The position numbers were made by a program, and so were the translations under genes. A model generated the notes under the pieces. The model was not told the DNA's origin and made no database searches. It was given only the letters and a program-made list of their open reading frames with translations. Below are positions 5,805 through 44,115 of a stretch of 64,000 nucleotides of DNA, piece after piece. The stretch is from Rhodosorus marinus CCMP1338 (taxonomy: Eukaryota > Plantae > Rhodophyta): positions 868,001 through 932,000 of the forward strand of contig JAMWBK010000003.1 in NCBI GenBank assembly GCA_029953675.1, in the 5' to 3' direction. Each line of letters starts with the position of its first letter. Positions within the stretch are counted from its first letter, which is position 1.

Positions 5805-7776
5805 ATGGATAGTGCGTATTCAAAGTACACGTCGAATCGTAAGATTCTGACATGGGTAGGGAAGGTTGCAAAGCTGTGCCGTCCCAAGAACGTTGTTTTC
5901 GTAGATGGATCGCGAGATGAGCACGATAGATTGTGTGAAGAGCTGGTGCAGAGTGGGACCTTTATTCGTCTCAACGAGGAGAAGCGCCCCAACTCGTACC
6001 TGGCCAGGTCAGATCCGAGAGACGTTGCACGAGTAGAGAAAGCTACCTACATCTGTACATCGAAGCGGGAAGATGCTGGTGAAACCAACAACTGGGAGGA
6101 TCCCGCGGTTATGAAGGAAAAGCTGGATGGATTACTAGCAGGTTGCATGGCGGGAAGGACGATGTACGTCATTCCCTTTTGTATGGGTCCTGTGAAATCC
6201 CCATTTGCTCGTTTTGGAGTGCAAATAACGGACTCCCCATACGCAGTTGTCCACTCGTACATAATGACGAGAATTGGGCAGAAGGTCCTAAACGCGATTG
6301 GAAAACGCCAGGACTTCTTGCCTTGCATTCATTCTGTCGGATACCCGCTTGAAGATGGCCGCCCCGATGTACCGTGGCCATGTGACCCGGACAACAAGTA
6401 TATCTGCCATTTTCCGGAGGACCCATCCGTCCTGTCTTATGGTTCCGGCTATGGTGGCAATGCTCTGCTGGGGAAGAAGTGCTTTGCACTGCGCATCGCT
6501 TCATACATGGGGAAGCAGGAGGGCTGGCTGGCAGAGCACTGCCTTATTATCGGATGCAAGTCTCCTAGTGGAGTGAAGAAGTACTTTGCAGCTGCCTTCC
6601 CCTCCGCCTGCGGTAAAACCAACTTGGCCATGCTCCGACCGAGTCTTCCCGGCTGGGAGGTTACTTGTGTTGGAGATGACATTGCTTGGCTAAGAGTGAG
6701 TTTTTGTTAACCGCTATGTGCACTGAGCTCGTCGATGTTGTGAACGCAACTCTAACAACGATGTTGCTTTCCCTACCAGGTTGGACCAGACGGCCGCATG
6801 TATGGAGTGAACCCAGAGGCTGGTTTCTTCGGGGTTGCGCCCGGGACATCGATGACAACAAATTACTCTGCGATGCAGGCCATCTCTCAGGATACAATTT
6901 TCACCAACGTGGCTTTGACACCTGACGGGGATGTTTGGTGGGAGGGCATGACGAACGAGAAGCCGGAGGAGGTTAGTCTCTGGATCTCTCTTGTGCTAGC
7001 TGGCAAAAGGTTTCTAACTTCTGCGCTTTCCTATCCATGCGACATAGCTGATCGACTGGCGGGGAGAAAAATGGAACCCGAACTCCGATACCCCTGCTGC
7101 CCATCCGAACTCAAGATACACGTGTCCCGCTCAGAATTGTCCAATAATTGATGAAGACTGGGAGGCACCTGATGGTGTTCCAATTTCCGGGATATTGTTT
7201 GGCGGCCGCCGAAAGACTGTGATTCCACTTGTGCAGGAAGCCCGAAGCTGGAGGCAGGGTGTTTTTATGGGATCATGCTGTGCATCGGAGAGAACCGCAG
7301 CTGCCGAAGGCAAAGTGGGAGAACTTCGCATAGACCCCTTTGCGATGATTCCATTCTGCGGATATAACATGGCGGACTACTTCTCCCATTGGCTTGAAAT
7401 GGGTCACAGAATGGGCCCTCACGCGCCAAAAATATTCTTCGTTAACTGGTTTCGGAAAGGAAGCAACAACCAGTTTCTGTGGCCCGGTTTCAGCGAAAAC
7501 ATTCGAGTTCTAAAGTGGATCATGGCTCGAACGGAGGACGATGTCGCCGTGGAGGACTCCCCGTACGGGTACCTTCCAAACCCGACGGACATTGACATGG
7601 ACGGGCTCGACCTTGACCAAGACACTGTTAATACGTTGCTTAGCGTTGATGCTGATGGCCTGGAGCATGATATTCAGCAATTCGGTGCATTTTATAAGCG
7701 CTTGGGTGACCGTCTACCAGAAACCCTGATGGAGGAAATGTCCCTGCTGAAGCAGCGACTTTTAAAATATATCTAA
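5805..7776 (+). CDS. pckG: Phosphoenolpyruvate carboxykinase, GTP-dependent, cytosolic type (3 exons)
   Basis: Signature [12 protein letters not shown] (~6596-6630), plus [54 protein letters not shown] and [15 protein letters not shown]. Introns at ~6696-6780 and ~6972-7045. Confidence 0.97.
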
Positions 7777-10421: not shown

Positions 10422-11946
10422 ATGAGCGTCACCATGTCGGATGTTGAAGCTGGCCGTGGCATTGGGACGTCTGCGGAAGGTGGTCGAGCGATGGCTCGAT
10501 TTTTGGGCGTGTATCGACGAGAGCTCGAGCTGATCTTCTGCGTGATCGGCCTGTACCTCTCCTACTTATCATATGGAATACTACAAGAGAAAATGTGAGA
10601 TCGGCGTGGGCTGCTCTGCTTTTCCCATCGGGACGAAGATGCGCTGCGCGTCTTCTGCTTGTTCTGACAGACCTTTTGGCACTGTTCCTTCTTTCTGGAC
10701 TTTTCGGTTTCTTTCGTTGATTCTAGATTTAAGGCGGAGTACGGTGGTGAAAATTTCAGATCCCCGATGCTTATGGTGCTCTGCCAGTGCGCTGTTGGCA
10801 GCATCACGGGGAAGGCGATCGTCGCCTTCATGTCCACGGAAACGGACGTGAACTCTTCCAAGGCAGATGCTCCCCAGTATAAATTCAGCCTTTGTGCGTT
10901 TGCGGTTCTGTCTTCAATGGTCCTATCGAATGCTGCCATTCAGTTCATCAGCTACCCGCTCCAAGTGCTTGCAAAATCCTGCAAGATGATTCCCGTGATG
11001 TTCATTGGAAAGGTCATCCTTCGTAGAGTCTACACAATCAAAGACTACGCCAGAGTTTTCTTGCTCACGGCCGGTGTCCTACTGTTCTCCAACGCCAACA
11101 TTGAACTGTTGAAAACCAGCGATGATGCGCTTGGGAGTCATGGGGGTTTGGGGCTGTTGCTCGTCGTCGCCGCGCTCTGTTTCGACGGGGTCGGCGGTCC
11201 GTACGCTGAGCGTACTTGCAAGGAATACGGCACAACCAGCCATGAACTCATGTTGTATCAGAATCTCTGGTCCGTTCCGATACTTATCGCCGGTGAGGAA
11301 AAAAGCATCAACATCGAAGAAACACTCGCAGGGGAATGGAGCGCGCTCTTGGCTTCTGCTCCCGGCAACCTTGCTTGGAAGTATTGTGCTAGAAACGGTC
11401 TTGCACAGGGCTTGAAAGCTTGGAAATGGTGGCATGATGTTCTTGATGGAGAGGGTGCCTAGCTCTGTCAGAAGTATTCAGCGAATTTCCGAGCTTGCTA
11501 GCAGTGCTCATCGTTGCTAGATCGTTGTCAGTACTAAGAATCAGCAAGCTGTCTCATGGAAAGATCCGAAAATTCAGTCTCAAGTTTACACTTGACGTTT
11601 GTTCCACTTCTCTGCAGGTATTCTCGTTTATGGAGAATTGGGATACATTATTAGCTTCATAAGCAAGCATCCGGAAGTGCTTATGGACTTGTTCATGTTC
11701 AGCTTATCGAGCTCTGCGGGTCAGGTTTTTGTGTTCTATATCCTGAGGAACTACTCGGCTTTGATATGCACGGCAGTAACGACCACGAGAAAATTCTTCA
11801 CGGTGCTTGTGTCAATTGTATATTACAATCACTCGCTTAGCTTGCAACAGTGGCTTGCTGTTTTCATGGTCTTTGGAGGAATTCTGTGGGAGGTTGTGGA
11901 CCATATTGCTCAGAAAAGATCAGTGACTCAGACCCGGAAGGGTTAG
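10422..11946 (+). CDS. SLC35B1: UDP-galactose/nucleotide-sugar transporter (SLC35B1/UTR-like)
   Basis: IFCVIGLYLSYLSYGILQEKI, SNAAIQFISYPLQVLAKSCKMIPVM, LCFDGVGG, GQVFVFY..AVTTTRKFFTVLVSIV. One intron spans 11293-11617. Confidence 0.9.
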
Positions 11947-16515: not shown

Positions 16516-17369
16516 AAATCATTCGGTCCACTTTGACCTTCTACGAACTCGATGAGTGCTTACAGAGGGATGACGTGAAGTCTGTAGAAAGAAAACCTGT
16601 CGATTAGTTGGTACTTTAGGTCGTACGGGCCATGGCTTTAGCAGCAGAACTTCTTAGATTAACGCAGTTGTCAGGTGCCCTTTGGGCGCACGGTTTAGAA
16701 ATCTGCTAGAAGAAGCGAAAAAGTACAAACATCCGACTCGATATCTGTCTTAACTGAGGAAACAGACCGACAAAGGATACTATCCAAAGATATTTTCACT
16801 GGAAGACGACGTCTGGTCAGGCTTCGTCCCTTCAGGCAGAGGTATTTCCATCAAGCGCAGAAAAGCAATCCCAGTCTAGCCAGCATGTTAAGGTCCTGAC
16901 AGATAATCTGCAAAAGGGGAAGGATCGAATAGCAGGCCAGACGATGTGAAGATGACCGATAAACCGGCTTACTAAGAAAACAAATGAATCGACAGAGAAT
17001 ACAATCCAAAACATAACTTCGATGGAAAACGAAAGTTGACCAAACTTCGTTCTCCTAGCAGACAGCTCCATCGCACTCAATGGCAATCGCAGGGCCAGTT
17101 CGAGTATCGGTAAGGATTTACTGACAATCGGCTCCGGGACGATGACTGTGAACATTGTTCTTCAGGAAGTTTCTGTTGGATAGTGGAGTTGTGTATGAAG
17201 GAAAGATCGTTGAGTTGTTTTCCTGGTTCTCTTCTTGAAGAAGACAAAGAGAAAGAGGGCGAGAGAGAACGATGTTGTAAAGTAGTGTACAATGAGGACC
17301 TGTCTGAATTAACATTTGGAAGGACGAAAGTCTTTCTGCTGTCTGTATGTGTTTCGTTTTTTTCCCAGG

Positions 17370-18236
17370 ATGATTGTGAGGGAGTATAGGCTGGTGATGC
17401 CGTTGACTGTTGATGAGTATCGAGTTGGGCAGCTGTATATGGTTGCGAAGGCTTCACAGCAGGAGACCGGTAAGACAGCTGGTGAAGGGATTGAGATTGT
17501 GAAGAATGAGCCTTACGTTGAAAACGAGCACGGTATGGGTCCTGGGCAGTACACGGAGAAGAGGATGTACTTGAAGAGTAAAGTGCCCAGCTTCGTTCGG
17601 ATGGTGATGCCTGAGAATGCACTAGTTCTGACCGAGTATTCGTGGAATGCTTTTCCGCATTGTAAGACGGTGTATGAAAATGAATGGCTTGGACAAAAGT
17701 TCATCCTCTCCGTGGAGTCCATGCATGCAAATGAGCCAGGCCTCGCTGAGAATCCACTGAATTTGAAAGGAGCAGATCTAGAGAAGAGGAAGGTCGAATA
17801 CCTGAACATTGCATGTGAGGACTCCTATGCTCCCATGTCGAAGGGTGAGGATCCCAGGACCTTCGTTTCTAATGAATCAGGACGAGGCAAACTCGCTGCG
17901 AACTGGTTTCTTAGTCCAGCGATTCCCGTCATGTGTGCATACAAAGTTGTCCGTTTGCAGTTCAAAGTCCTCGGCCTCCAGAGGAAGGTACGAAATCAAG
18001 CTTTTACATCCCACTTCCTCGGTCTGAGATCTCGTAACTGAGCTGTGCCTTTGTTGCATTTTGGCTAGGTCGAGGAATGGGGACAATTCTACGGAATGCA
18101 GGTGCCCTTGATCCAGTACCACAGAAAGCTCTTTTGCTGGATTGATGAATGGTTTCGACTGGACATGAAGAAAATCAGGGACATGGAGCAAAAGACCCGA
18201 GATATAACAAAGCAGAAACTGCAGCAACCTGTTTAA
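17370..18236 (+). CDS. PITP: Phosphatidylinositol transfer protein (class I PITP, START-like fold)
   Basis: MIVREYRLVMPLTVDEYRVGQLYMVAK, GEGIEIVKNEPY, GQYTEK, EYSWNAFPHCKT, PVMCAYKVV, YHRKLFCWIDEWF. One intron ~17988-18068. Confidence 0.95.
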
Positions 18237-22398: not shown

Positions 22399-23683
22399 CT
22401 AGTCCTCGTTGTCCTCATCTTCGTCGTCGGACAAGTTGTCTTCCATGTCACCGAGGACGTTCTCCAACAGTTCGGCCAATTCGTCCACAGCGTCACGGGC
22501 AATCGAGTTGCTGTTCAGATTCAGCTTCTCCAGCGACGGCAGGTCAGAGCACTTTTTACCGATCTCACGGGCCCCATCGGCGGTAATAGCGTTCTCTTCG
22601 AGAGAAACTTCCTTCAGGTTCTTGTGGAGCTCTTTGTCAAGAGCATCGGCAATTGTCTTTGCACCATCGGACCCTAGCTCGTTTTCATCCACAATAAGCT
22701 TCTCTAGTCTTTTCTTCGTCTTCAGCATACGAGCAATTGCCTCCGCGCTATCCTCCGTCAGCTCATTTGTTGAAATGTCTAAAACTTTCAGGTTCGGTGC
22801 GGATTCGCAGAGTGCGTCCAAGAGCAAAATCATACCATCATCCTCGACTGACAAGTCCCTAATGACCGCATACTCCAGACTGTCACATTCCTTCAGAACA
22901 TCGGCCAACGCCTCGGCGCCTTCCTCTCCGAAAGTATTGTCACTGACGTTGATCGTTCGCAAGGACGAACAAGTGCCTAAGGCTTTGCTGATCGCAACAC
23001 TTCCCTCTCGTCCAACCCTCGTTGACGTCATTTCAAATTCTTCCAGGGATGGACACTTCTCCACCAGATAAGATGCTTCAATGGCTCCAGCAGATTCCAG
23101 CAAGTTGTTTGAAATGTGAATAGCCTGATTTCCGATAGAACAAGTGAGGGTTGGATCCAACGTTAGCCATCAACAAACGCGCCGTGCTTCGCAGTTTGAG
23201 ACGTACCTTTAGAGTAGATGATTTCGCATCTCCTAGGAGGATCTCAGCGACCACCTTCATAGCTTCGTAGTTGAGCCCGTTGTTTCGGAATGATACTCTT
23301 TTCAGCTGCTCAGACTTGTTGGAGAGCAGCTTCTTGGCTACCAGGACGCCCTTTGCACCGAGAGCATTGTCCGATATGTCGATGCTCTCAAGCTTTGGTG
23401 CTTCCTCAAAACAATCACACAAGTGCTGGAGAGACGCCAAAGCTTCCTTCTCTGGCCTCCTCGCGATTGAGTCTGCGATGTTCAAACTGAGAACGGTCTT
23501 GTTAATCTCTCTCTTCAAGAAAAAATCGCGGATCGCTTCGGCTGCTTCTGGACTATAGCTCTTTCCGGACACTACCAACTCATCAACTCCGTCCGCGATC
23601 GAGGAGAAAATCTCCAGCGCCCGTTCGCGTGTGGAAACCATCTCGCGGTCCTCACCAATGCCGCTGACGACGAACCTCGACAT
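22399..23683 (-). CDS. RANGAP: Ran GTPase-activating protein (LRR plus acidic tail)
   Basis: VSGKSYSPEAAEAI, IDISDNALGAKG, FRNNGL, HISNNLLESAGA, VSDNTFGEEG, repeated LRRs and C-terminal DMEDNLSDDEDEDNED. One intron ~23126-23207. Confidence 0.93.
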
Positions 23684-25759: not shown

Positions 25760-27728
25760 ATGAGTGGAGAAGGTGATGTTATGGAGCGTGTGCGTGCGCT
25801 AGGGCTCTGTTTGGATGACGCTGTTGTGACTGGCGTTTCAATTGGACTGCCGAGTGCGGACGCGAGCGGGCGTTTGCAGGAGTTCTCAAGTCCTTTTGAT
25901 TTTGAGAGACTGTTTGAAGGTGAGTAGCGACTGTGGTTTGTAGAAAGCGTGGACTGGGCGTTCGTTTTTGCCCATAGTCCAGGGCTGTGTGATTCTCGTA
26001 CTAGGGTGGTTACATTTGTACTGAGCCTGAGGTCTCGTCAACGTTTTCCTTACAGGTCTTTGCGGCATTTCAGCTTTGCCAGATGAGGATGTGAACTTAA
26101 TGTTGGAGAAGAACGTTGTTCAGGTGCGCAAAAATGAGGACGGAGTGAGAGAAAAGTATCAGTTGTCATCCCCGGAAGAGGTCATTCGGATCGCCGGTAG
26201 GATTGCTGACTTCGACCTTGCTGCACAACATGGAGTTCCGGAGTTTATTCTGCCAGCGCTGGATATCACTTTCAAGATGGCCATCAGTGTTGGACTAGAG
26301 GCACTCAAACATGCCAAGATTCGTCTAGAAAGAACTACCGCGGGGAAGATGTTATTGCCTGAGGAACTTCGAGACTCGACTGGGGTCATATTTGCTGCCA
26401 GCTTCCCTGTTTTAGACTCTTTGATAGAGGAAGTCTCGAAACATCTCAGGTACAAACTGCAGAAGCAATCAACACGAGAAAAGGTTGAAATGCTTCGTAG
26501 AATAAGCAAGAATGTGAAGTCCCAGTTTCCGGGGATCGCTAAAGTAATTCTAGGGGAGTTGGAGAGCATCGAGAGGTCGAAGGAAGATCTGAGCTATGAG
26601 TTCAACAGAAAGCTGCTCTTCCAGATCCTCGTTATGGCAAACTCCCAGTTGGCGGAATTGATTGGAGCCAGAGGCCCGAACGTTGATGTGAACGCTGCGT
26701 GTGCTTCATCCTCCATGGGGATCGCCATTGCCGAGGACTGGATACGAGTGGGGAGGGCCTCGAGGGTAATTGTTGTGGGTGCGGACAACGTGACTTCGAG
26801 GAACATGTTGCAATATGTTGGTACTGGGTTTCTGGCTCTAGGCGCGGCTAGCACCAAGGGGTGCGCAGAAGAAGCGGCTTTGCCTTTCAGTCGGAAACGG
26901 AACGGCCTTGTTTTGGGATCGGTATGTATGAATTCACCTCCCGCTGATACGGTCAGGTGTACTGACGGAAAGCGCTTTGGATCAATTCTGGTTGGACTAC
27001 AGGGAGCGGTTGGCTTGGTAATCGAATCAGAATCAGCAGCCAAAGAAAGGGATGCGGAAATTCTTAGTCGGATTCTCGCAACGAGAATTGTTAATAGCGC
27101 ATACCACGCCTCTGGGATTGACACCAAGCATGTGACAGGAGAGCTGCATGTGTTGCTGGACAGAGTTGAGAAAATTCACGGAGTCAAGGTACTTTATGAG
27201 TTTTGAAACCACGAAACTTATGAGCCATCCTGTCATCCTGTCGTTGCTAGTGCTAACCACGGAGGTATTTTGGGGTCTTTTAGAGGGAGGCGTTTGCTGA
27301 GAATGGTATTTACATAAGCCACGAGACCTTTACTTGTGTTAATGGAGGCTGTGCTGCAGTGGAGGCTAAAGCGTTGAGGGAAGGCTTTGGAGATGAAACT
27401 GCCTCAAAGCTCCTAATTGCCAATACGAAGGCTTTCACTGGTCACCCTATGGGGGCTGGAATTGAGGATGCTGTGGCTGTGATGTCCTTGCACACTGGAA
27501 GAGTTCCTCCGATACCCAGGAAGGCGGACCTCGATGAAAACCTGGGGGAGCTGAATATTTCATCCGGCGGTTCGCATGATAAATTCTATGCATTGCGGTA
27601 AGAAGCAAAGAGAGCAGCGCGAGCATGGTTACGAATACTAACTCTAGCCTTGGTCTGCATTCTGAGTATTCAGGTTTGCCGCAGGATTCGGTTCGCAATG
27701 TGTGTTCATTGCATATGGCAAGGTGTGA
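25760..27728 (+). CDS. Stand-alone beta-ketoacyl synthase (KS) domain protein, 5 exons
   Basis: Intact Cys-His-His triad: GPNVDVNAACASS (~26690), YISHETFT (~27315), NTKAFTGHPMGAGIE (~27430); C-terminal RFAAGFGSQ. Introns at ~25921-26055, 26923-27002, 27190-27283 and 27599-27673. Confidence 0.9.
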
Positions 27729-29350: not shown

Positions 29351-32115
29351 ATGAAAGAAACTGGGGATGATATCGTCACCCTCAGGAAGAAAGCATCGCA
29401 AAAGGCGGTGAGCAAGGCCGCAATCGTGCCTCCCAGTCCGCCTGATGCGAGCGAAGGGAGCGCTGGAGAACAGGTGAGCTGGCTCTGGGCCTAGCTACTT
29501 TTTGGTGTTTTGGGAATACACCTTACCTGCCTTCATGTTGTTTTGATCGGTTTTCTAGTTGGCTGGGAATGGGGGCGTTCCAGAGAAAACGGGTGATCTG
29601 AAACTCAGGTCCGTAGGCTCTCATGCTAGGGATCTTAACGGAAAGGGCCCTTCGGATCCAGCTCCATTGCCGGTGAAGATGAATCCCGAGTCTGGAAGAG
29701 GGAGGGATAAGAGTTCTTATGCAAACTTTAACCTTAGTATTGACTTGAGAGATGCCATTCGGCAACTACGCAAGCTCGCTAGGAAGAATTTCAGGCTCGC
29801 TTTGGCCCCTGTGATTGTCTCCTGCCTGCTTTTTTATTTCTATTTTACTAACGTGGTAATCCACCCGCGTGTTACGAGAGAGTTCGTTCCGGGCCAGACT
29901 GAGATTGTCGCTGGACAGAAGGATATGAAGTCGCTCCAGCAAGGAACTTCGCTAATAGCCGCCTGCAAAGATGAGAATGGCCTACTAACGGTTTTGAGGA
30001 CTTGGCTAAAGGTCAACAACGTGGATGAGGTTGTCTTGGTGGATTGGGGTTCTGAAAAACCTTTCTCGAAGGTGCTGTCGAGACTCATGGACGTGAGCGG
30101 CATCGTCCTCGTTACTGTAGACGACGCTGGAAGCTTCAACGTCGCTAGCGCTTACAACCTGGCGATGCACTATGCCAGCCATGACATCGTGATCCGAGTT
30201 GACTGCGATCAGATATTGGAGCAGGACTTTGTTGTTTCTCACCCCCTAGCACGCGAGCCCCTTTTCTATGCCGGAAGTTGGACTGAGGCGAGGAACTCAA
30301 ATGAGCTACAGCTGAATGATGTGCTTGTAGTACGCCAAGAGTACTTCTGGAAGACGGGCGGATACGACGAGAGGATTGAAGTGCGCGGAGGTGAAGACGA
30401 AGATCTTTATGCTCGCCTCCTCGCGATTCCTAGAATGAAGAGAAGAAGTGTTAATTACGAGAAGGTTAAGCATTTACCTCCTCTGCTGGACACAAAGTCA
30501 CAATTGAGCGAATTATTATCTCCTGTCGACATCGATTGCAACAAAATAATGCTCAGTTCGCTACCAGCTTGGGATCCAAGCGCAGTTCAGGACCGAGCGC
30601 TGTACAGAATTGACGTTAGCTCGTCGGATCGCTACTTAATAAGCTTGCTGCGGTAAGTTGCAACCGCACGCTCCTGGCACGGTGCTTTTTTGCGAAAGCT
30701 CGGGTATCTTAGGCGTCGTGTTGCACCCCAACTTTTCCAAACAAGCAGGAAACCAACATCCCTGGCTGATCGTCTATCAGAGAAGACCTTCGGCGATACT
30801 CGAAAACTCGCGCTGCGGACAAGGTTGAACTCTGACTTCCGAGTTCCGAATGCGTTTCTGGAGGGAATGGATACAAGGTCCCTGGAGATGCTTCTCGGGA
30901 AGCTCTTGATGCGGGTGAGGAGCTCGGGATCTAGTAGCAAACCCACCGTGTTCTTTGCACATTGCATGCATGGACTCGGCAATAGAATACGTGCGCTCGG
31001 ATCTTCGATGGCAGTTGCACGTAATACCGGAAGGTATGTCCGCTGTTGTCTTGCCATTTGTTGCGTGATGCCATAGGAGGAGGCTCATGGCCGATTTCAT
31101 GTTTCAAATGTTGTTCACTTCCTCCAGGGAACTAGTTGTGATTTGGGATAACGATTCGCATTGTAGCGCAAAGTTTTCAGATTTGTTTGGCAACGACTAC
31201 CCTGTCATTGAAAATTTGAAGGCGACGTTCCCCTTCACTCAGGAGGCGTTGACAGACCCTGCATGGGCCACTGTCAAAGCTTTTAACTATATGGATACTG
31301 AGGAGGGCTCTGAGAAGAACAAGGAGGTCACAGAATTGAAGGGAAACCACATCTACTACAAAGGTAGCAGCGGATGAAAAGCCTAAGCTCAATCCTATTC
31401 AGGTTTCCTCGAGAGACCAGGTTCTGATTCCACATACCCACGTACATGCTATTCACCATAGGAGCGTTCATTATGAACGCGCCGAAGCTATCGTCCTGGA
31501 AAATGGACAACGACGAACTTGCAAAGCTCAAGCCATCCGCCGATGTTCAAGAAATCCTGGACAAGTTTGATCCGAGACAGGACTTTTCCGACGTCGTGTC
31601 AGTGCACATTCGGAATAGGGGCCTTGACACGGACATTGACGGAGTTGACAGTAAACGTGAGTATACAGAGAAAGGCGCCGCGGACATGCAGTACTGGAGG
31701 GAGCGGAGCCATTACACAAATTTTGTGAAGAAGGTATGCATTTTCGCTGAAAACCGTCAGAGTACCAAAATGCTGGAGAGAAGCTGACCCTCAAGAACGT
31801 TACCGCAACCAGATGCAAGAGATAGTCACGGCTGAGCCACAGACAAAGTTTTATCTATCTTCGGATACGGTGCACATACTCGACGAAATGAAGAGATTGT
31901 TTCCTGGGAAGATTCTGGTCACTCCCAGAGATTGTGACGATCGAGGGGGGGATTGTATCAAGTATGCTTTGGCTGACCTGTATCTATTAGCGCGTGGAAA
32001 ATATGTTCTTGGTAGCAACTGGAGTTCGTTTACGGAGGCAGCGCAAAGACTAGGGGGTTTGCAGGGGTTTATGGCGGGTCGCGACTTTGCAAACGAAACT
32101 CTCTCTACGAACTAG
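29351..32115 (+). CDS. Type II membrane two-domain glycosyltransferase (GT-A/GT7C-like plus fucosyltransferase-fold)
   Basis: TM LALAPVIVSCLLFYFYF; GT-A motifs LVDWGS, RVDCD, GGYDERIEVRGGEDEDL; second domain HCMHGLGNRIRAL, VSVHIRN, FYLSSD, DLYLLARGKYVLGSNWSSFTEAA. Confidence 0.82.
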
Positions 32116-32337: not shown

Positions 32338-34824
32338 TCAAGTCGCGGCCGCCGACACTGGGACTGCTTCTTCAAAGTTGGGCTGACCAGTTGTTAGCAT
32401 TACTTCTTCCCAACTGCGACTTTCGACATCAACCTAGGGGTGGATAAGCGCTCACAGGAAACGAGTGAGCGATTGTGGACCTTCTAGGTTGTAGAACGGC
32501 CGTCCTACCTCCATCCTTCCTTGAGAAATAACTTCCATTGGGATGTAGACGTAATGAGTTCGAATAAGCCCGACAGTGAAACCACTATCGTTTCGATATA
32601 TTCGAAGGCACAAGATTACCGCAGTTAGCAAAGGCCTGTACACGAGATCGTGATCGAATTTCTGCCTAGAGTCGTAGGGACATTTGAATTTTGCTCACGT
32701 GTAACCTGCAAAAGCGCCATGCACTGCATTCTGTGCCAACATGGCACAGTAGAGGTTGTCTGCTGCGTTCGGAGGAACAGTTCGGATCATATAAGTAGGA
32801 TCAATGTACCTAAGATAGTTGGTGAAGAGCGAAAATGTCAAATTGATTGTCCAGAGCTCGAACCAAGAACGTTGTACACTCTGTGTTTCGTACTTGAGCG
32901 TGACCTCGTCTTGTCTGAGGGAATTAGTTATATGCTCTTTCAACCAGAGCCCGACGTCGGGAAGTCTCATATTTCCAGATGCGTCAGTCTCGTTCTTAAT
33001 CTCACTTTCAATATGCATTCCGGCGCCTTCCGCAACGACAACCACGCAGTGGCCTTTTCGATGAAGCACTTTTCGAATATGTGCAATAAGGCCCTTCGCG
33101 GAGAGAAAGAATATTAGATTGTGGCATTCAGAAATCCATACTGTTCAATGCTCATAAAGGGATACGAGAGCTGGTTTGGACGGGATTCACCTTCTCCCCT
33201 TCTAGAACGAAGGGTACTTCTGGAATCAAGCAAACGTCTACATCTCTTGATGCCACTGTAGCCGCCATCGTAATGTGCCCTGAATGTCTCCCCATAAGTT
33301 TCACCAATCCAATTCCTACTTACGCGCGGAGGTTGGAATGGTAAGAACAAACTCACAACAAAGAATTGGAGATGCTGGGTGCCTTCTGACCATTAAAGTA
33401 ACTCGTGGCTTCAGTTTTGGCGCTCTTGATGGCTCTCTGAGCTTCCTCGACTGCGGTAGCAAAGCCAAAACTCCTGTCTATGAGTGCTATATCGTTGTCT
33501 ACTGTTTTCGGGATACCAATGACCGCATAGGGAAGTTTCCTCGATCTCAGCTCGTCTTGGGAAGGAAAGCAAAAAAGAAACAAAAAGGACTAGCAGAGTG
33601 AGTATTTCTGCTCATGTCCTCTCGGGAGAGAGTTGTGAAGACTCCTTGTTCCAAGGCGTCGGTCACTAGTAGCCACTCGAGATGAACTCAAGTCGAAAAC
33701 TCGAACCTCGCAGGGATTCTATATAGGTCGATATGGTCGATGCGAAGACCACTCTAACTGTCGCAAGGAACAAGGCGCGACTATTGAAAGACTGTCTTTG
33801 CACAAAGGAACGTGCTGCTCGAAGAAACGATTTCCTTACCAAAGACTTTGATCGCTCCCCGATGGCTTCCGTCTCCTCCAATGACAAAAACCATGTTGAA
33901 TCCGAAATCGACAATTGCATCCACGATCATCCGCGTGCTATGGCCTCCGCGGGAGGACCCTAAGTAAGAGCCTCCATCGTGATGGATATCGTCAACTTCC
34001 TCATCCTGTGATGGTGCAAGGGTTCAGTTTGCCGAGTGGAAAAGGGGCATCAGGCTCGGCAAAAGCAAAACGTTCAGAAAGGCCGGAATGCGGTGTTACC
34101 GTTAACGGTTTGATCTCATACTCCGGTTCATAAAAACCGCGAAATCCAAACGGCACGCCATATACTTCTCTTACACCGTACGTGTACTTCAGGCACATGT
34201 AAATCTCCCTAATAACCGTATTCAAACCAGGGCACAGACCTCCACATGTGACAATGGCAGGCTGATCACCGGACAAGAGAGGAAATTCTGTCAGATAGAA
34301 GGCAAAGCGAGCTAAAATTTCTAAGTCTCCCTGCTCAAGCATACCTTTGCCTTTCTCGGATCGTGCAAAATCGCCTTTCGAGGTCCGCCTCTCAAGAACT
34401 CCCTTGAAACCGTCTCATGTTTCGTATGGCTCACAATATCAAGGAGTACAGTCTCAGAATTTGACACGAAAATATTCTCGCCTACCCCTTGTGCTCTGTA
34501 TGGACTAGGAAGAGACTCCACATCCAGGAAATCTGATATCTACGTTTCCATCATCCCACCAATCATTCAGTTCTAAGTCCACGAGATACGCCCCGTTGTC
34601 CAGACGCATACCTTGCAGGGAATGAAGTTCCCAACATCATCCTCGACTGTTGAGCCCACTATCTTCGTATAGCTTGCCTCCGCCTGCTTGGCTATGGACT
34701 GGATCTTGGGCTGATCATGTACAGAGGCCACATCCTCCAGCGACTCCTGATGCAGCTTCGCAATCAACTCCATCGTATTCGTCCGAATCATTCGACTCGA
34801 CTCTCGTTTCCCACTTGAAGCCAT
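32338..34824 (-). CDS. PFK: ATP-dependent 6-phosphofructokinase (plant/group X type), multi-exon
   Basis: [41 protein letters not shown] (Gly form indicates ATP), [63 protein letters not shown]. Confidence 0.95.
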
Positions 34825-37935: not shown

Positions 37936-38882
37936 TCCACAATTGCTGATGAATTTGCGTAGAGAGAAACAAAAAATTGAGACTTGAAACAAGATGGAAT
38001 TCAGCCGTGCAGAGGTCGGACATTCCTACCGAACGGCAACGCTACCCAACGTAGCGCATAGTTCTACATCTTACAGGAGCTCTATGCAGAAACAGTCAGC
38101 GGAAAGTCGGCACCGTCCTTGCGCGCGACGTTCTCGGCTACTAGGGCTGGAACTGGATATCTGCCGTGCCCCTCAGAGAAATCGCGTCGCCCACACCAAT
38201 TCCACTGCTGGCAAGTTTAATCAAATGGAGGCGCACTCGACAACGAGCTCAGCGAGAGGCAATCTCCTACACAAGGGTACACATCCATGTCTTCCAACGC
38301 ATCCTGAAAAACAAAACCTTTCTGGTCAACAACGGGCCCGCTTCATACAGGCCCAACGAGGACGGGCTGCTTAAAGAAGTCTTGGAAGAAAGTAGTCGCA
38401 GTAGTGACACCCCAGAGATCAACCAAGGTAGCGAATATCTATCTATTCATTAACACTCTCAATTCACCGGTGAGATTCCTTCGTTTCCATTGCCTTTTAA
38501 TGGAATAACTCCTCGTCGAGAATTGGTTGGTAACACTTCCCTCAACAAATTGGTCGTCAGCGGGACGGGCGTGGAGATGACCCTCTCCATGTGTAAGAGC
38601 TGTGACACTTCGGGAAATGTATTCCGGACAGAAAGGGAGGGGGTCATTGAGGTAAATCAGAGTTGGTGCGAGCGGAAGAGCCGAGGTGAGGGACCTTCGA
38701 AAGATATTCTGGTCGGGAGTCCGCGGTTATAAGAATTATTGCAAGCCGTTTTTTCGGAAAGGTAATTTTAGGACGAGGTTAGAGGGGAGCCAAGCTGAGG
38801 TTGGTGGTGACGAGAGTCTTTTGACTTTTGTGGGTAGGTTTGCTTCGAAAGTATTTTCGTTTCTTGTAGTTTGAGGGCAAGC

Positions 38883-39705
38883 ATGGGAGGAGATGGGGGT
38901 ACATTGAACAACTCCCGCATGGAGTTGGTACGTGTGAGAAAAGAGATGATGAAGAAAGGGAGTTCCTCAGTAGTGGAGAAGGATGTAAAGGAGAGGGATA
39001 GGTGGATGACGTGTGCAGTTTCAAGGGAGCGTCTGAAGATTCCGGTGGTTGCTTGTAGACTAGGGTATTTGTATAACAAAGAGGCACTTATTAACTTGAT
39101 TTTGGACTCGGCACGGAGGACGAGGATGGCAGAGTTTGCGCACGTTCGTTCCTTGAAAGACATGCTTGAGTGCAAACTTGAGCTTGTGGAAGACGGAAAA
39201 AATGCAGTTTTCAAGTGCCCAATATCTTTGAAAGAGGCAACAGGGGCGATTAAGTTTTCTGTCATGTGGGGTTGTGGACATGTCGTATCTGACCAGGCTT
39301 TGAATCAGCTTAAGAAGGAAGAGAAGAAATGCGTTCTGTGCGAGGAAACGTTTACAGACCTTGTAAAGATACACCCTGATGACAAGGTAAGAATGATTTT
39401 CTCGAGAAACTTGCAGGTTTATGTTGTGACTTACATTCCCTCGCTTGCCAACGTATGTCCAGACGAGAACAGAATTGCGTGAACAGCTTGAGGCTAAACA
39501 AGCTAAGAAAAAGAAGGACCGGAAGAAGAAGCCTGATGAGACTACCAAAGTGGATCAGCCGAAGAAGAAACAAAGGGTCTCTGCGCCGGATGAGAAGACG
39601 CCAAAGATTTACGAATCACTGTTCACGAAAGGACACGATCACAAGCATACTGCTAACGCCAGGGGTTCCTTCACTGGAGTCTCTCTGCGTCCTTCTGGGG
39701 TCTGA
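38883..39705 (+). CDS. RTF2: Replication termination factor 2 (Rtf2 RING-like)
   Basis: MGGDGGT start, RWMTCAVS, CRLGYLYNKEA, FAHVRSLKD, FKCPIS, WGCGHVVS, CVLC, Lys-rich tail and YESLF. One intron. Confidence 0.93.
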
Positions 39706-42445: not shown

Positions 42446-43557
42446 TCCTCCTTCCATAAAGAATTCTGATCATACGAGTGGCTACACAACCAGAATACGA
42501 CCTGCCGAAAACAGAAATTCTGACAGAGCCCCGCCCCTACGACTCGAGCAAGAAAGACTAAGCCCTTCCAACTTGATACTTTTTCCAGAAACGAACAATT
42601 CCAACCAGCCATTCACACTAAGAAGAAGCTCAGCAACAACATAAATACGTCGAACTATCTTACACACATACACACCTCTTCGATTGAACTCACGTCAGCA
42701 TTGCTGTTTAGCGGGCAGGGGGAAGTGGGGAGGAGTTGCACTGGGTGGCAGTGAACCAAACTATCGAATCCACAGCCTTACCTCCACAACCTCCAGAGAC
42801 AGAGAAAAAAAAAAAAAGGGAGAAAAAAAAAAATTCCCCACAAACGCTGATTGAGTTTCTCGCTTCTCAGGGTAGAGTTAGGCTCTTGAGCATACGGGGC
42901 AGATGATTGAGCTAATGCACAGAAAACAAGATCCATTCCTTTCCGATAAAGAAACAGAAAAGGACAATAGACAAAAAGCCATACGTAACCCGGGCTGTTT
43001 TCCCAAGTAACGGGCTCCTCTTACACTCAATGCTTCTCAAACAGGACCAACCTCTTTCTCAACAGCGATGCACACCACATTCCCCAAACTGTTCATATTT
43101 CGCCAACATTTCTCTGTTGGAAATGGCCGTGTGAGCTGAAGGGCATAATCAAACATAGATACGTCGAACAAGATATATCTCAAGACTTAACTTTTTTATC
43201 AAAATACACCGGGGGTTATGAAAACATAAAATCTAGATTCAATGAAAGAAAACCAAAATAGTTTTCTGATTATAGCAAATGAACCTGAATTCGATTTTTT
43301 TCTAGGGGGGAGGGTGTTTCGTATAGTAAGAAGAGTTAACTTTTTTTGATGGTAAGGAATTTGGTAAGTATTCTGGCGGGCATATTGGGGGATTGGTATT
43401 TGAGGAGTGGGCTGGGGTGTTGGGGGGGAGGGGATGGGATTTGGGATAGTTGGGAACGTGTGTGGGTCTGAAAGTGCGGGTGGGCTCGAGGCTTTCTGGA
43501 TTAGGCTTGTGTAGCTTTCAGGGGGTTTTTTTTTTTATCTAGGGGCGTTTGATAGCG

Positions 43558-44115
43558 ATGGCGGAAGTTGAGCAACAGTCGAAGAAACCGCGTATCGATG
43601 AGCAGAACGGAGAGGACTCGAAGACTGCCGAGAAGGTGACCCCGATACCGGAAAATCATGAAGGGTTCCTACCGTACCTCTCGGTGAAGGATGCAGATGC
43701 AAGCTTGGAACTCTACAAGAAGGCGTTCGATGCTGATGTTGGGATTACCCTGAAAATGCCAGACGGCACGATTGCGCATGCATCGTTGCAAGTGGGTCGG
43801 ACCCAGATTATGCTGTGTCAAGAAAATGATATGTTCCCCATGAAAAGCGCGAAGTCAATTGGAGGATGCCCAATGAATCTGACTAGGTATGTGGAAGACG
43901 TGGACAGCGCGTTTCAGCAAGCTGTGGATGCAGGCATGGAGGTCAAGGAGAAGCTCAAGACGCATTTTTACGGGGACCGAATGGGCACGCTGGTTGATCC
44001 CGATGGTTACGAGTGGACCCTCGGCTCACGTTTAGAGATCGTCTCCGAAGAAGTTATGCAGGCACGCATGGATGAACAAATGGCAGAAGCTGCACCTCCT
44101 CCAAAAGCTGAATGA
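43558..44115 (+). CDS. VOC/glyoxalase-bleomycin-resistance family protein (PhnB-like bacterial subtype), intronless
   Basis: TPIPE..PYLSVKDADASLELYKKAFDA..MPDGTIAHASLQVG..IML..YVEDVDSAFQQAVDAG..FYGDRMGTLVDPDGYEWTL. Confidence 0.92.
   Translation: MAEVEQQSKKPRIDEQNGEDSKTAEKVTPIPENHEGFLPYLSVKDADASLELYKKAFDADVGITLKMPDGTIAHASLQVGRTQIMLCQENDMFPMKSAKSIGGCPMNLTRYVEDVDSAFQQAVDAGMEVKEKLKTHFYGDRMGTLVDPDGYEWTLGSRLEIVSEEVMQARMDEQMAEAAPPPKAE

Follow-up and report, generated by a model that had tools for sequence, protein, structure and literature searches.

Which enzymes build agar, porphyran, carrageenan and the sulfated polysaccharides of red microalgae is unknown despite the economic weight of these polymers (PMC9127767, PMC7359372). 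A gene of the unicellular red alga Rhodosorus marinus CCMP1338 raises the question of whether a single polypeptide could provide the necessary chemistry. The gene resides within a stretch of 64,000 nucleotides (contig JAMWBK010000003.1, positions 868,001 to 932,000; hereafter, the window) and was originally predicted to encode a fusion of a GT-A glycosyltransferase (GT) with a fucosyltransferase (FucT)-fold domain, a candidate polymerase of alternating D-galactose (D-Gal) and L-galactose (L-Gal). We find that the protein belongs to a large two-domain family which is kept across red-algal classes and offers both chemistries for a β-D/α-L disaccharide repeat. This family is a concrete, testable candidate for the synthesis of red-algal matrix glycans, and the R. 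marinus protein is probably a dual-activity enzyme building a unit of a β-linked hexosyl residue and an α-linked L-fucose (L-Fuc) or L-Gal residue in sulfated matrix glycans. An agaran polymerase, the more specific claim, is one candidate function, made less likely by how widely the family occurs.

Gene structure and the two glycosyltransferase domains

The 770-aa product of the gene is 100% identical to the deposited hypothetical protein NDN08_003019 (P0001) of R. marinus, a member of the Stylonematophyceae. All five introns (79–98 nt each) are bounded by GT..AG. The features of the gene, all on the forward (+) strand, are as follows:

29351–32115, +, whole gene of six exons, from the ATG at 29351 to the stop codon ending at 32115; 770-aa product
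29351–29473, +, exon 1, start codon and the first 41 aa of the cytosolic tail; donor GTGAGC
29559–30652, +, exon 2, the remainder of the tail, the transmembrane (TM) anchor and the complete GT-A domain
30749–31033, 31128–31363, 31462–31733 and 31813–32115, +, exons 3–6
29805–29861, +, lone TM anchor (aa 124–142), positive-inside, type II; hydropathy KD19 = 1.94, helix in the AlphaFold2 (AF2) model
29937–30485, +, GT-A domain (aa ~168–350), identified from Pfam PF10111, PF00535 and PF02709, the β4GalT7 alignment, and profile and fold matches
30486–30932, +, interdomain region (aa ~351–467) with intron 2 (30653–30748) inside; conserved in two family alignments, predicted local distance difference test (pLDDT) score >90
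30933–32112, +, NodZ-like FucT-fold domain (aa ~468–770) in exons 3–6, identified from the NodZ profile, Foldseek and motif conservation

For intron 2, an acceptor at 30712 (782-aa product) was considered and dropped in favour of the one at 30748, because it introduces a 12-aa insertion relative to the homologues, and the deposited 770-aa model is reproduced with 30748. Between the two domains there is nothing but a conserved linker holding one 96-nt intron. Transcriptomes of Porphyridium (MMETSP0313) and Compsopogon caeruleus (MMETSP0312) contain the fusion as a single open reading frame (ORF), and so the possibility of two separate genes, named at the outset as one of the ways in which the prediction could fail, does not hold. 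Two more MMETSP transcripts, marked complete, also encode the fusion as one ORF, and on intron-poor, Bangiales-like contigs (66% GC) it is found as an unbroken ORF of 812 aa.

An AF2 model computed from an alignment of 68 sequences has a mean pLDDT of 85.8 and a predicted template-modelling score (pTM) of 0.79, with residues 160–767 mostly above 93, and displays a confident two-domain arrangement. It replaced a model built from three sequences, in which the GT-A half had a pLDDT of 52; NodZ is the top Foldseek match for both models. The N-terminal ~120 residues were modelled with low confidence and are probably disordered. The sole strongly hydrophobic segment of the protein, aa 124–142, has the basic stretch RKLARKNFR on its N-terminal side, and a matching TM segment is present in the Porphyridium and Pyropia homologues (P0002 and P0003), whereas the bacterial and viral homologues have none. 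Both catalytic domains lie C-terminal to this single TM segment, with intact motif sets in each, thus placing them in one polypeptide and in the same compartment, as expected of a co-polymerase.

The GT-A domain is recognized above threshold by the Pfam profiles Glyco_tranf_2_2 (PF10111; E = 8.6e-12, 45.5 bits versus a cutoff of 27.3) and Glycos_transf_2 (PF00535; E = 3.6e-5, 24.2 bits versus a cutoff of 23.3). The profile Glyco_transf_7C (PF02709) has precomputed matches on the homologues P0002, P0003 and P0030, and reaches 30.3 bits on the Cognatishimia homologue; its cutoff is passed by bacterial members and by other red-algal ones. The characteristic motifs include VDWGS (D203), the metal site D256-C-D258 and a GT7C-like GGYDER..GGEDEDL at aa 308–324 (nt 30357–30407), a stretch that reads GGYDERIEVRGGEDEDL. 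The deviation of this stretch from the family consensus, discussed below, coincidentally brings it nearer the canonical GT7 motif, WGGEDDD. D256-C-D258 and G318-G-E-D-E-D-L324 align with the catalytic-base region of β4GalT7 and with residues 173–257 of β4GalT1; D256, D258 and D321 are at least 90% conserved. Searched against the PDB, a profile of 68 family members matches the GalNAc-transferring (A1) half of the Escherichia coli K4 chondroitin polymerase (K4CP; E = 3.2e-10), β4GalT1 (E = 6.7e-6) and human CHSY3, whereas Foldseek retrieves the heparosan synthase PmHS2, K4CP and a Leptospira GT-A enzyme (6p61). K4CP, CHSY and PmHS2 are two-domain co-polymerases which make alternating disaccharide repeats. 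The GT-A half, thus, resembles the Gal/GalNAc-transferring domains of bifunctional polymerases (K4CP and PmHS2) and GT7 enzymes, in support of the proposed dual activity.

The interdomain region, which consists of a β-hairpin and helices, packs against the C-terminal domain in the AF2 model. The C-terminal domain contains the motifs HGLGNR (aa 480–485), VHIR (627–630), FYLSSD (683–688) and DLYLL..GSNWSSF (725–743; motif III), as well as a pair of cysteines, Cys711 and Cys718. In the profile search against the PDB, it matches NodZ (2hhc) with E = 9.6e-13 across NodZ residues 4–296, with HxR and D..S-x-F in register: R630 aligns with NodZ R182, VHIR with VHVRH, and ADL..SNWSSFTE with IDM..PTSAFTR. 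The same search also matches plant FUT1/FUT4 and POFUT1. Similarly, NodZ ranks first among the Foldseek matches in the PDB (E = 6e-12, target-normalised TM-score of 0.56), followed by POFUT1, FUT8 and AtFUT1. All three motifs of the α2/α6/O-FucT superfamily are, thus, present in combination with a NodZ-like fold, and the named motifs of both domains are far beyond chance.

The features on which the original prediction was built can all be recognized in the protein. The coordinates 29351–32115 coincide exactly with the start and stop codons, the type II anchor corresponds to aa 124–142 with the preceding basic residues, and the GT-A domain with its DxD and GT7C-like GGYDE..GGEDEDL motif as well as the FucT motifs GLGNR, VHIR, FYLSSD and DLYLL..GS..SSF are each present.

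Distribution across red algae, marine bacteria and giant viruses

When 1.84 billion representative proteins were searched exhaustively with a profile, 9,769 matched at E ≤ 1e-3; 1,042 of these reached E ≤ 1e-30, and the best 150 were all below 1e-96. The family, with paralogues, is represented in five red-algal classes, namely, Stylonematophyceae, Compsopogonophyceae, Porphyridiophyceae, Bangiophyceae and Florideophyceae. The named closest relatives are red-algal and include two paralogues from Porphyridium purpureum (FVE85_3634 and FVE85_0808) and BU14_0961s0003 from Porphyra umbilicalis, with further homologues in Pyropia vietnamensis (MMPV_009491), Compsopogon caeruleus and Gracilaria domingensis (KAI0560665.1). 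In the latter protein (P0017, 638 aa), the alignment is lost past aa ~540 and motif III is missing, which suggests a frameshift or truncation in the gene model and not a true loss. Another member comes from a compact contig of eukaryotic origin, where it is surrounded by proteasome, SUI1 and HisRS genes.

The fusion is not specific to red algae. In GTDB, scanned with one motif pattern and with each prokaryotic species represented by one genome, there were 142 matching loci, of which 79 were kept; about 60 of the 79 match query residues ~170–762, that is, both domains, at 27–36% identity. The carriers are mostly marine Rhodobacterales, Alteromonas, Vibrio and Limnohabitans, and include Pararhodobacter, Nioella, Citreimonas, Cognatishimia, Ruegeria, Leisingera, Hyphobacterium and Oceanicaulis, along with Vibrio variabilis and Rubrivivax. 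Many of the bacterial carriers are associated with algae. In four Ruegeria loci (L024, L025, L027 and L054), the gene is found on small contigs (5–7 kb) with a similar layout, which suggests a repeated or plasmid-borne element breaking the assemblies. The complete fusion is also present in giant-virus bins and in BFVD, with Edafosvirus A0A3G4ZUI3 matching over 641 columns (E = 6.6e-50) and Solivirus matching too, and many phage contigs carry the GT-A half alone. In a rough neighbour-joining tree (computed without support values), a eukaryotic clade, within which the named red-algal sequences are all found, spread over several paralogous subclades, is set apart from the bacterial and giant-virus sequences, which form a clade of their own.

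Both domains occur in the same order in 145 of the 153 best relatives, and in reversed order in two; in these, P0069 and P0092, the FucT-like domain comes first and the GT-A domain second. Across 68 diverse members, DWS, DxD, GYDER..GWDDxDL, HGLGNRxR, HxR, D688, R714, D725 and GSxWSSFxE are at least 90% conserved, and essentially all near-invariant catalytic residues are common to the eukaryotic and bacterial clades. This pattern indicates that both domains are under selection together. The Rhodosorus protein keeps D203, D256xD258, G309/E312, D321 and R327 in the GT-A half, and H480–R485, H628/R630, D688, R714, D725 and S741–F743 in the C-terminal half. The eukaryotic clade is distinguished by the N-terminal anchor, D-C-D in place of the bacterial D-A-D, and the conserved Cys711/Cys718 pair (bacteria have Q at 718), a combination that fits the oxidising lumen of the secretory pathway. 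Substitutions between the two clades near the donor site (H477/D, Y647/W and A515/C) are leads only, and we do not take them as evidence of a donor switch. One eukaryotic subclade (P0032, P0034, P0035, P0037, P0038 and P0059) has lost the DxD and WDDEDL motifs of the GT-A domain (e.g., VACAH and VDCGY), with the NodZ-like half intact, and may consist of single-activity derivatives.

The surroundings of the bacterial genes (3 kb on each side of the 79 loci) are informative with respect to the donor sugar. Bona fide gmd and/or fcl genes are present in 20 of the loci, and a pyruvyl transferase gene lies directly downstream in ~17. A Pfam census of the 135 nearest ORFs identified PS_pyruv_trans (18), GDP_Man_Dehyd (11), FkbM methyltransferase (10), sulfotransferases (5 + 4) and further GTs. 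For instance, in Hyphobacterium, the gene is preceded by one for a long coiled-coil protein and followed by gmd, fcl and a gene for a Wzt-type ABC exporter ATPase (order GT-gmd-fcl-wzt), with gmd and fcl both scoring far above the NCBIfam equivalog cutoffs. The Alteromonas neighbours encode a coiled-coil protein, a TPR-FkbM methyltransferase, a pyruvyl transferase and a sulfotransferase, whereas the Cognatishimia locus encodes a Wza-type exporter. A 59-kb plasmid of Sulfitobacter dubius, isolated from a kelp gametophyte (NZ_CP136701.1), has the gene among fcl, manC, gmd, GT10, WcbI, rfbABCD, cysDN and galE, a complete gene set for a polysaccharide related to fucose, rhamnose and sulfate. On a Salipiger profundus plasmid, the gene is followed by those for pyruvyl transferase, fcl, FkbM, gmd and sulfotransferase. 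Because gmd and fcl adjoin the bacterial genes, GDP-L-fucose is the best-supported donor for the bacterial NodZ-like half, with pyruvylated, methylated and sulfated polysaccharides as the likely products.

Candidate function and donor sugars

From the gene model, domains, motifs, topology signals, distribution and bacterial context, we infer the donors, acceptor, linkage positions and processivity of the R. marinus enzyme as follows. The protein would be a Golgi-resident type II membrane GT with two inverting catalytic domains in the lumen. Its GT-A domain, equipped with DxD and a GT7-like acidic motif, is predicted to be metal-dependent and to transfer a hexose from a UDP-sugar into a β linkage; D-Gal or GalNAc are the likeliest candidates because this half is related to GT7 and to the A1 half of K4CP. 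The NodZ-like domain would transfer an L-sugar from a GDP-sugar into an α linkage, this sugar being L-Fuc in the bacterial relatives, and L-Fuc or its 6-hydroxy analogue, L-Gal, in red algae. Jointly, the two domains would produce a β-hexose/α-L-Fuc (or L-Gal) disaccharide unit in a sulfated polysaccharide of the extracellular matrix, either repetitively, in the manner of the co-polymerases K4CP, PmHS2 and LARGE, or by two consecutive additions, as in PgtA. The bacterial context points both ways: the ABC-exporter, coiled-coil and methyltransferase genes next to some members hint at polymerisation, and other loci, in which the gene is accompanied by many GTs, hint at the assembly of repeat units. 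The red-algal lineages that possess the family make sulfated, galactan-rich matrices (PMC9031348, PMC7359372).

Several observations weigh against this assignment. In the Rhodosorus protein, Glyco_transf_7C reaches 22.5 bits (E = 8.8e-5), just short of its curated cutoff of 23.0, and the Pfam NodZ profile (PF05830) covers aa 492–537 only, with 18.3 bits (E = 1.1e-3) versus a cutoff of 28.3. Since both scores are below the curated cutoffs, the two domains are superfamily-level relatives only of GT7 and NodZ, and specificity is not readable from family membership. Furthermore, the protein departs from the family consensus in having EVRGGEDEDL in place of QTYGWDDEDL and ND in place of NG at positions 294–295. 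FucT-fold enzymes are not confined to GDP-Fuc, as illustrated by plant GT106, which uses UDP-L-Rha. Finally, the 64-kb window contains no cluster of glycan genes from which a substrate might be deduced, and a literature search retrieved no assayed member of the two-domain family.

The alternative that fares best is a non-processive di-glycosyltransferase which adds one Gal followed by one Fuc or L-Gal, capping or branching its glycan or glycoprotein target (at a linkage region, side chain or O-glycan, for example) without making a backbone. This possibility, to which we assign a clearly lower probability than to the broader dual-activity assignment, is modelled on PgtA of Dictyostelium and Toxoplasma, a fusion of a GT2 β1,3-galactosyltransferase (GalT) with a GT74 α1,2-FucT which modifies Skp1 and is the only characterised GalT+FucT fusion; it acts sequentially rather than processively (PMC6939170). 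The bacterial loci hold extra GTs (GT2, GT1/GT4 and GT10), as is typical of repeat-unit assembly with one sugar per GT, and the multiple red-algal paralogues would suit diversified side-chain specificities. However, some of the bacterial genes adjoin those for a Wzt ABC-exporter ATPase, long coiled-coil proteins or FkbM methyltransferases. Such surroundings are usual for systems that depend on an ABC transporter, where multidomain GTs carry out the polymerisation and the chains are ended by methylation. Moreover, the GT-A half is structurally nearest to co-polymerases of glycosaminoglycans.

Agarans alternate β-D-Gal(1→4) and α-L-Gal(1→3), and the narrower proposal holds that the red-algal enzymes are agaran-type co-polymerases, with the GT-A domain adding β-D-Gal (1→4) from UDP-Gal and the NodZ-like domain adding α-L-Gal (1→3) from GDP-L-Gal, or that they make an equivalent D/L-Gal repeat in red-microalgal mucilage. 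We regard this as unlikely, although several lines of evidence favour it. Both chemistries, inverting transfer from a UDP-sugar to give a β linkage and from a GDP-L-sugar to give an α-L linkage, would be combined in one lumenal polypeptide, and the closest solved kin of the GT-A half are β1,4-Gal/GalNAc transferases, including the polymerase K4CP. For agaran, the donors have been proposed to be UDP-D-Gal and GDP-L-Gal (PMC9127767), and, in line with the original prediction that the backbone enzyme had not been established, reviews still list the GTs of the agar and carrageenan backbones as unknown, with GT7 proteins suspected of forming the β-1,4 bond in Chondrus and Porphyra (PMC9127767, PMC7359372). 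The family is present in Pyropia/Porphyra, which make porphyran, in Gracilaria, which makes agar, and in Porphyridium, the exopolysaccharide of which contains L-Gal (PMC9693049). In Stylonematophyceae, the bound polysaccharides carry much sulfate and are rich in galactose (58–87 mol%), with almost no fucose (≤0.6% in three of five strains; PMC9031348). The families reported for Gracilariopsis and Chondrus include none of GT10, GT23 and GT68 (PMC5970526), so that a FucT-fold domain in these algae needs another explanation. Taken together, the separation of the red-algal clade from the bacterial one, the near fucose-free galactans and the absence of classical FucT families from CAZy-type surveys of florideophytes (PMC5970526) make GDP-L-Gal a reasonable donor for the red-algal enzymes.

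By contrast, bacteria and giant viruses also possess the family widely, and the sugar pathway linked to it in bacteria is that of GDP-fucose. There are several paralogues per red alga, so that a one-gene-one-backbone assignment is unjustified, and one eukaryotic subclade has a degenerate GT-A site. The NodZ and FUT8 kin make α1,6 links and the POFUTs O-Ser/Thr links, and thus an α1,3 regiochemistry is not predicted; alternating processive action is proposed by analogy with K4CP, CHSY and PmHS2, and the known GalT+FucT fusion, PgtA, adds its sugars sequentially. Accordingly, the original prediction stands in part. The anchored fusion with intact motifs in both halves makes chemical sense as proposed, but the fusion is not specific to red algae: homologues common in lineages lacking L-Gal glycans had been named as something that would refute the prediction and, at the family level, such homologues are encoded in many Proteobacteria and some giant viruses, lineages without known L-Gal glycans. 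Likewise, GDP-L-Gal as the donor is weakened, given that the bacterial genes adjoin those for synthesis of GDP-L-fucose rather than GDP-L-Gal. It is, therefore, rather improbable that the red-algal clade, including NDN08_003019, comprises backbone synthases of D/L-galactans (agaran/porphyran-type) with the donor switched from GDP-L-fucose to GDP-L-Gal; under such a scenario, this clade would derive from, or share ancestry with, bacterial enzymes of Gal/Fuc polysaccharides.

That only one half of the Rhodosorus protein is catalytic, with the other being a carbohydrate-binding or scaffolding module, is very unlikely because the near-invariant catalytic residues are retained in both halves, although the subclade of P0032 and its relatives has kept the FucT-like half alone and the GT7C-like motif of Rhodosorus is off the family consensus.

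For the favoured dual-activity assignment, the choice of donor matters in either direction. If the red-algal enzymes use GDP-L-Gal, the long-standing question of the backbone becomes directly testable; if they use GDP-Fuc, there are unrecognised fucosylated structures in red-algal matrices. The bacterial members offer a tractable entry, being soluble proteins from genetically accessible marine bacteria with loci that point to GDP-fucose, pyruvylation and sulfation.

The other genes of the window provide little context. The only glycan-related one encodes a transporter of the UAA family, which comprises Golgi transporters of nucleotide sugars and 3'-phosphoadenosine 5'-phosphosulfate; it is located ~18 kb upstream of the GT gene, with no sign of a functional link between the two. 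Both immediate neighbours are not glycan-related, so there is no gene cluster. The genes identified are as follows:

5805–7776, +, GTP-dependent phosphoenolpyruvate carboxykinase with at least one intron (PEPCK_N, E = 1.2e-97; PEPCK_GTP, E = 1.2e-69)
10767–11462, +, exon of the UAA-family transporter (PF08449, E = 3.4e-35)
17316–18041, +, phosphatidylinositol transfer protein
22399–23160, −, leucine-rich repeat (LRR) protein
26076–27601, +, beta-ketoacyl-synthase-domain gene, immediate upstream neighbour
32695–34342, −, phosphofructokinase-like gene, immediate downstream neighbour on the opposite strand
38871–39482, +, Rtf2 RING-finger protein
43549–44115, +, glyoxalase-family protein

Comparison with known glycosyltransferases

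The C-terminal domain is most closely comparable to NodZ, the GT23 α1,6-fucosyltransferase of Bradyrhizobium (2hhc/3six), nearly all of which it spans, including the GxG loop, with FUT8, POFUT1/2 and plant FUT1 as the wider fold kin. The likeness is known from sequence and predicted fold, with identity of only ~18–19%. Unlike NodZ, the Rhodosorus protein is membrane-anchored and fused to a GT-A domain, and the red-algal donor may not be GDP-Fuc. The N-terminal half shares with the GT7 enzymes β4GalT1 and β4GalT7 the GT-A fold, DxD and a C-terminal acidic motif at the WGxEDDD region, and differs from GT2 in having DWS where GT2 has DDGS. The polymerase idea draws on the functional analogy with K4CP, CHSY3 and PmHS2, which also possess two catalytic domains; in these enzymes, however, the partner is a second GT-A domain, whereas here it has the GT-B-type FucT fold.

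PgtA resembles the family in joining GalT and FucT in one polypeptide that makes a Fuc-Gal disaccharide, and its domain order is swapped between species (PMC6939170), as it is in P0069 and P0092. Nevertheless, it is cytoplasmic and soluble and acts on a single target protein, whereas the red-algal proteins have a TM anchor and a lumenal-type Cys pair; moreover, its FucT half belongs to GT74 rather than being NodZ/GT23-like, in a comparison drawn from the literature. By contrast, the relatives from Salipiger profundus (WP_076625978.1), Sulfitobacter dubius (WP_317406961.1) and Edafosvirus, with 27–36% identity over aa ~170–762, are true family members which share the domain order and the invariant motifs. 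The bacterial ones differ in being cytoplasmic, without TM or Cys711/Cys718, in having D-A-D rather than D-C-D, and in being encoded in polysaccharide operons.

Database labels for the family include 'hypothetical', 'Glycosyltransferase 2' and 'galactosyltransferase-related', as in the case of the Salipiger profundus protein ('galactosyltransferase-related protein'), and the FucT-like half seems to have been overlooked in CAZy-style surveys, which list the proteins at most as 'GT7' or 'GT2'. Our literature search retrieved no description of a GT7+NodZ/GT23 fusion or of a red-algal galactan synthase. Thus, two-domain GTs in general, and the GalT+FucT fusion PgtA in particular, were known already, whereas a family that joins GT7/GT2-like and NodZ-like domains and is common to red algae, marine bacteria and giant viruses is, as far as we could find, uncharacterised.

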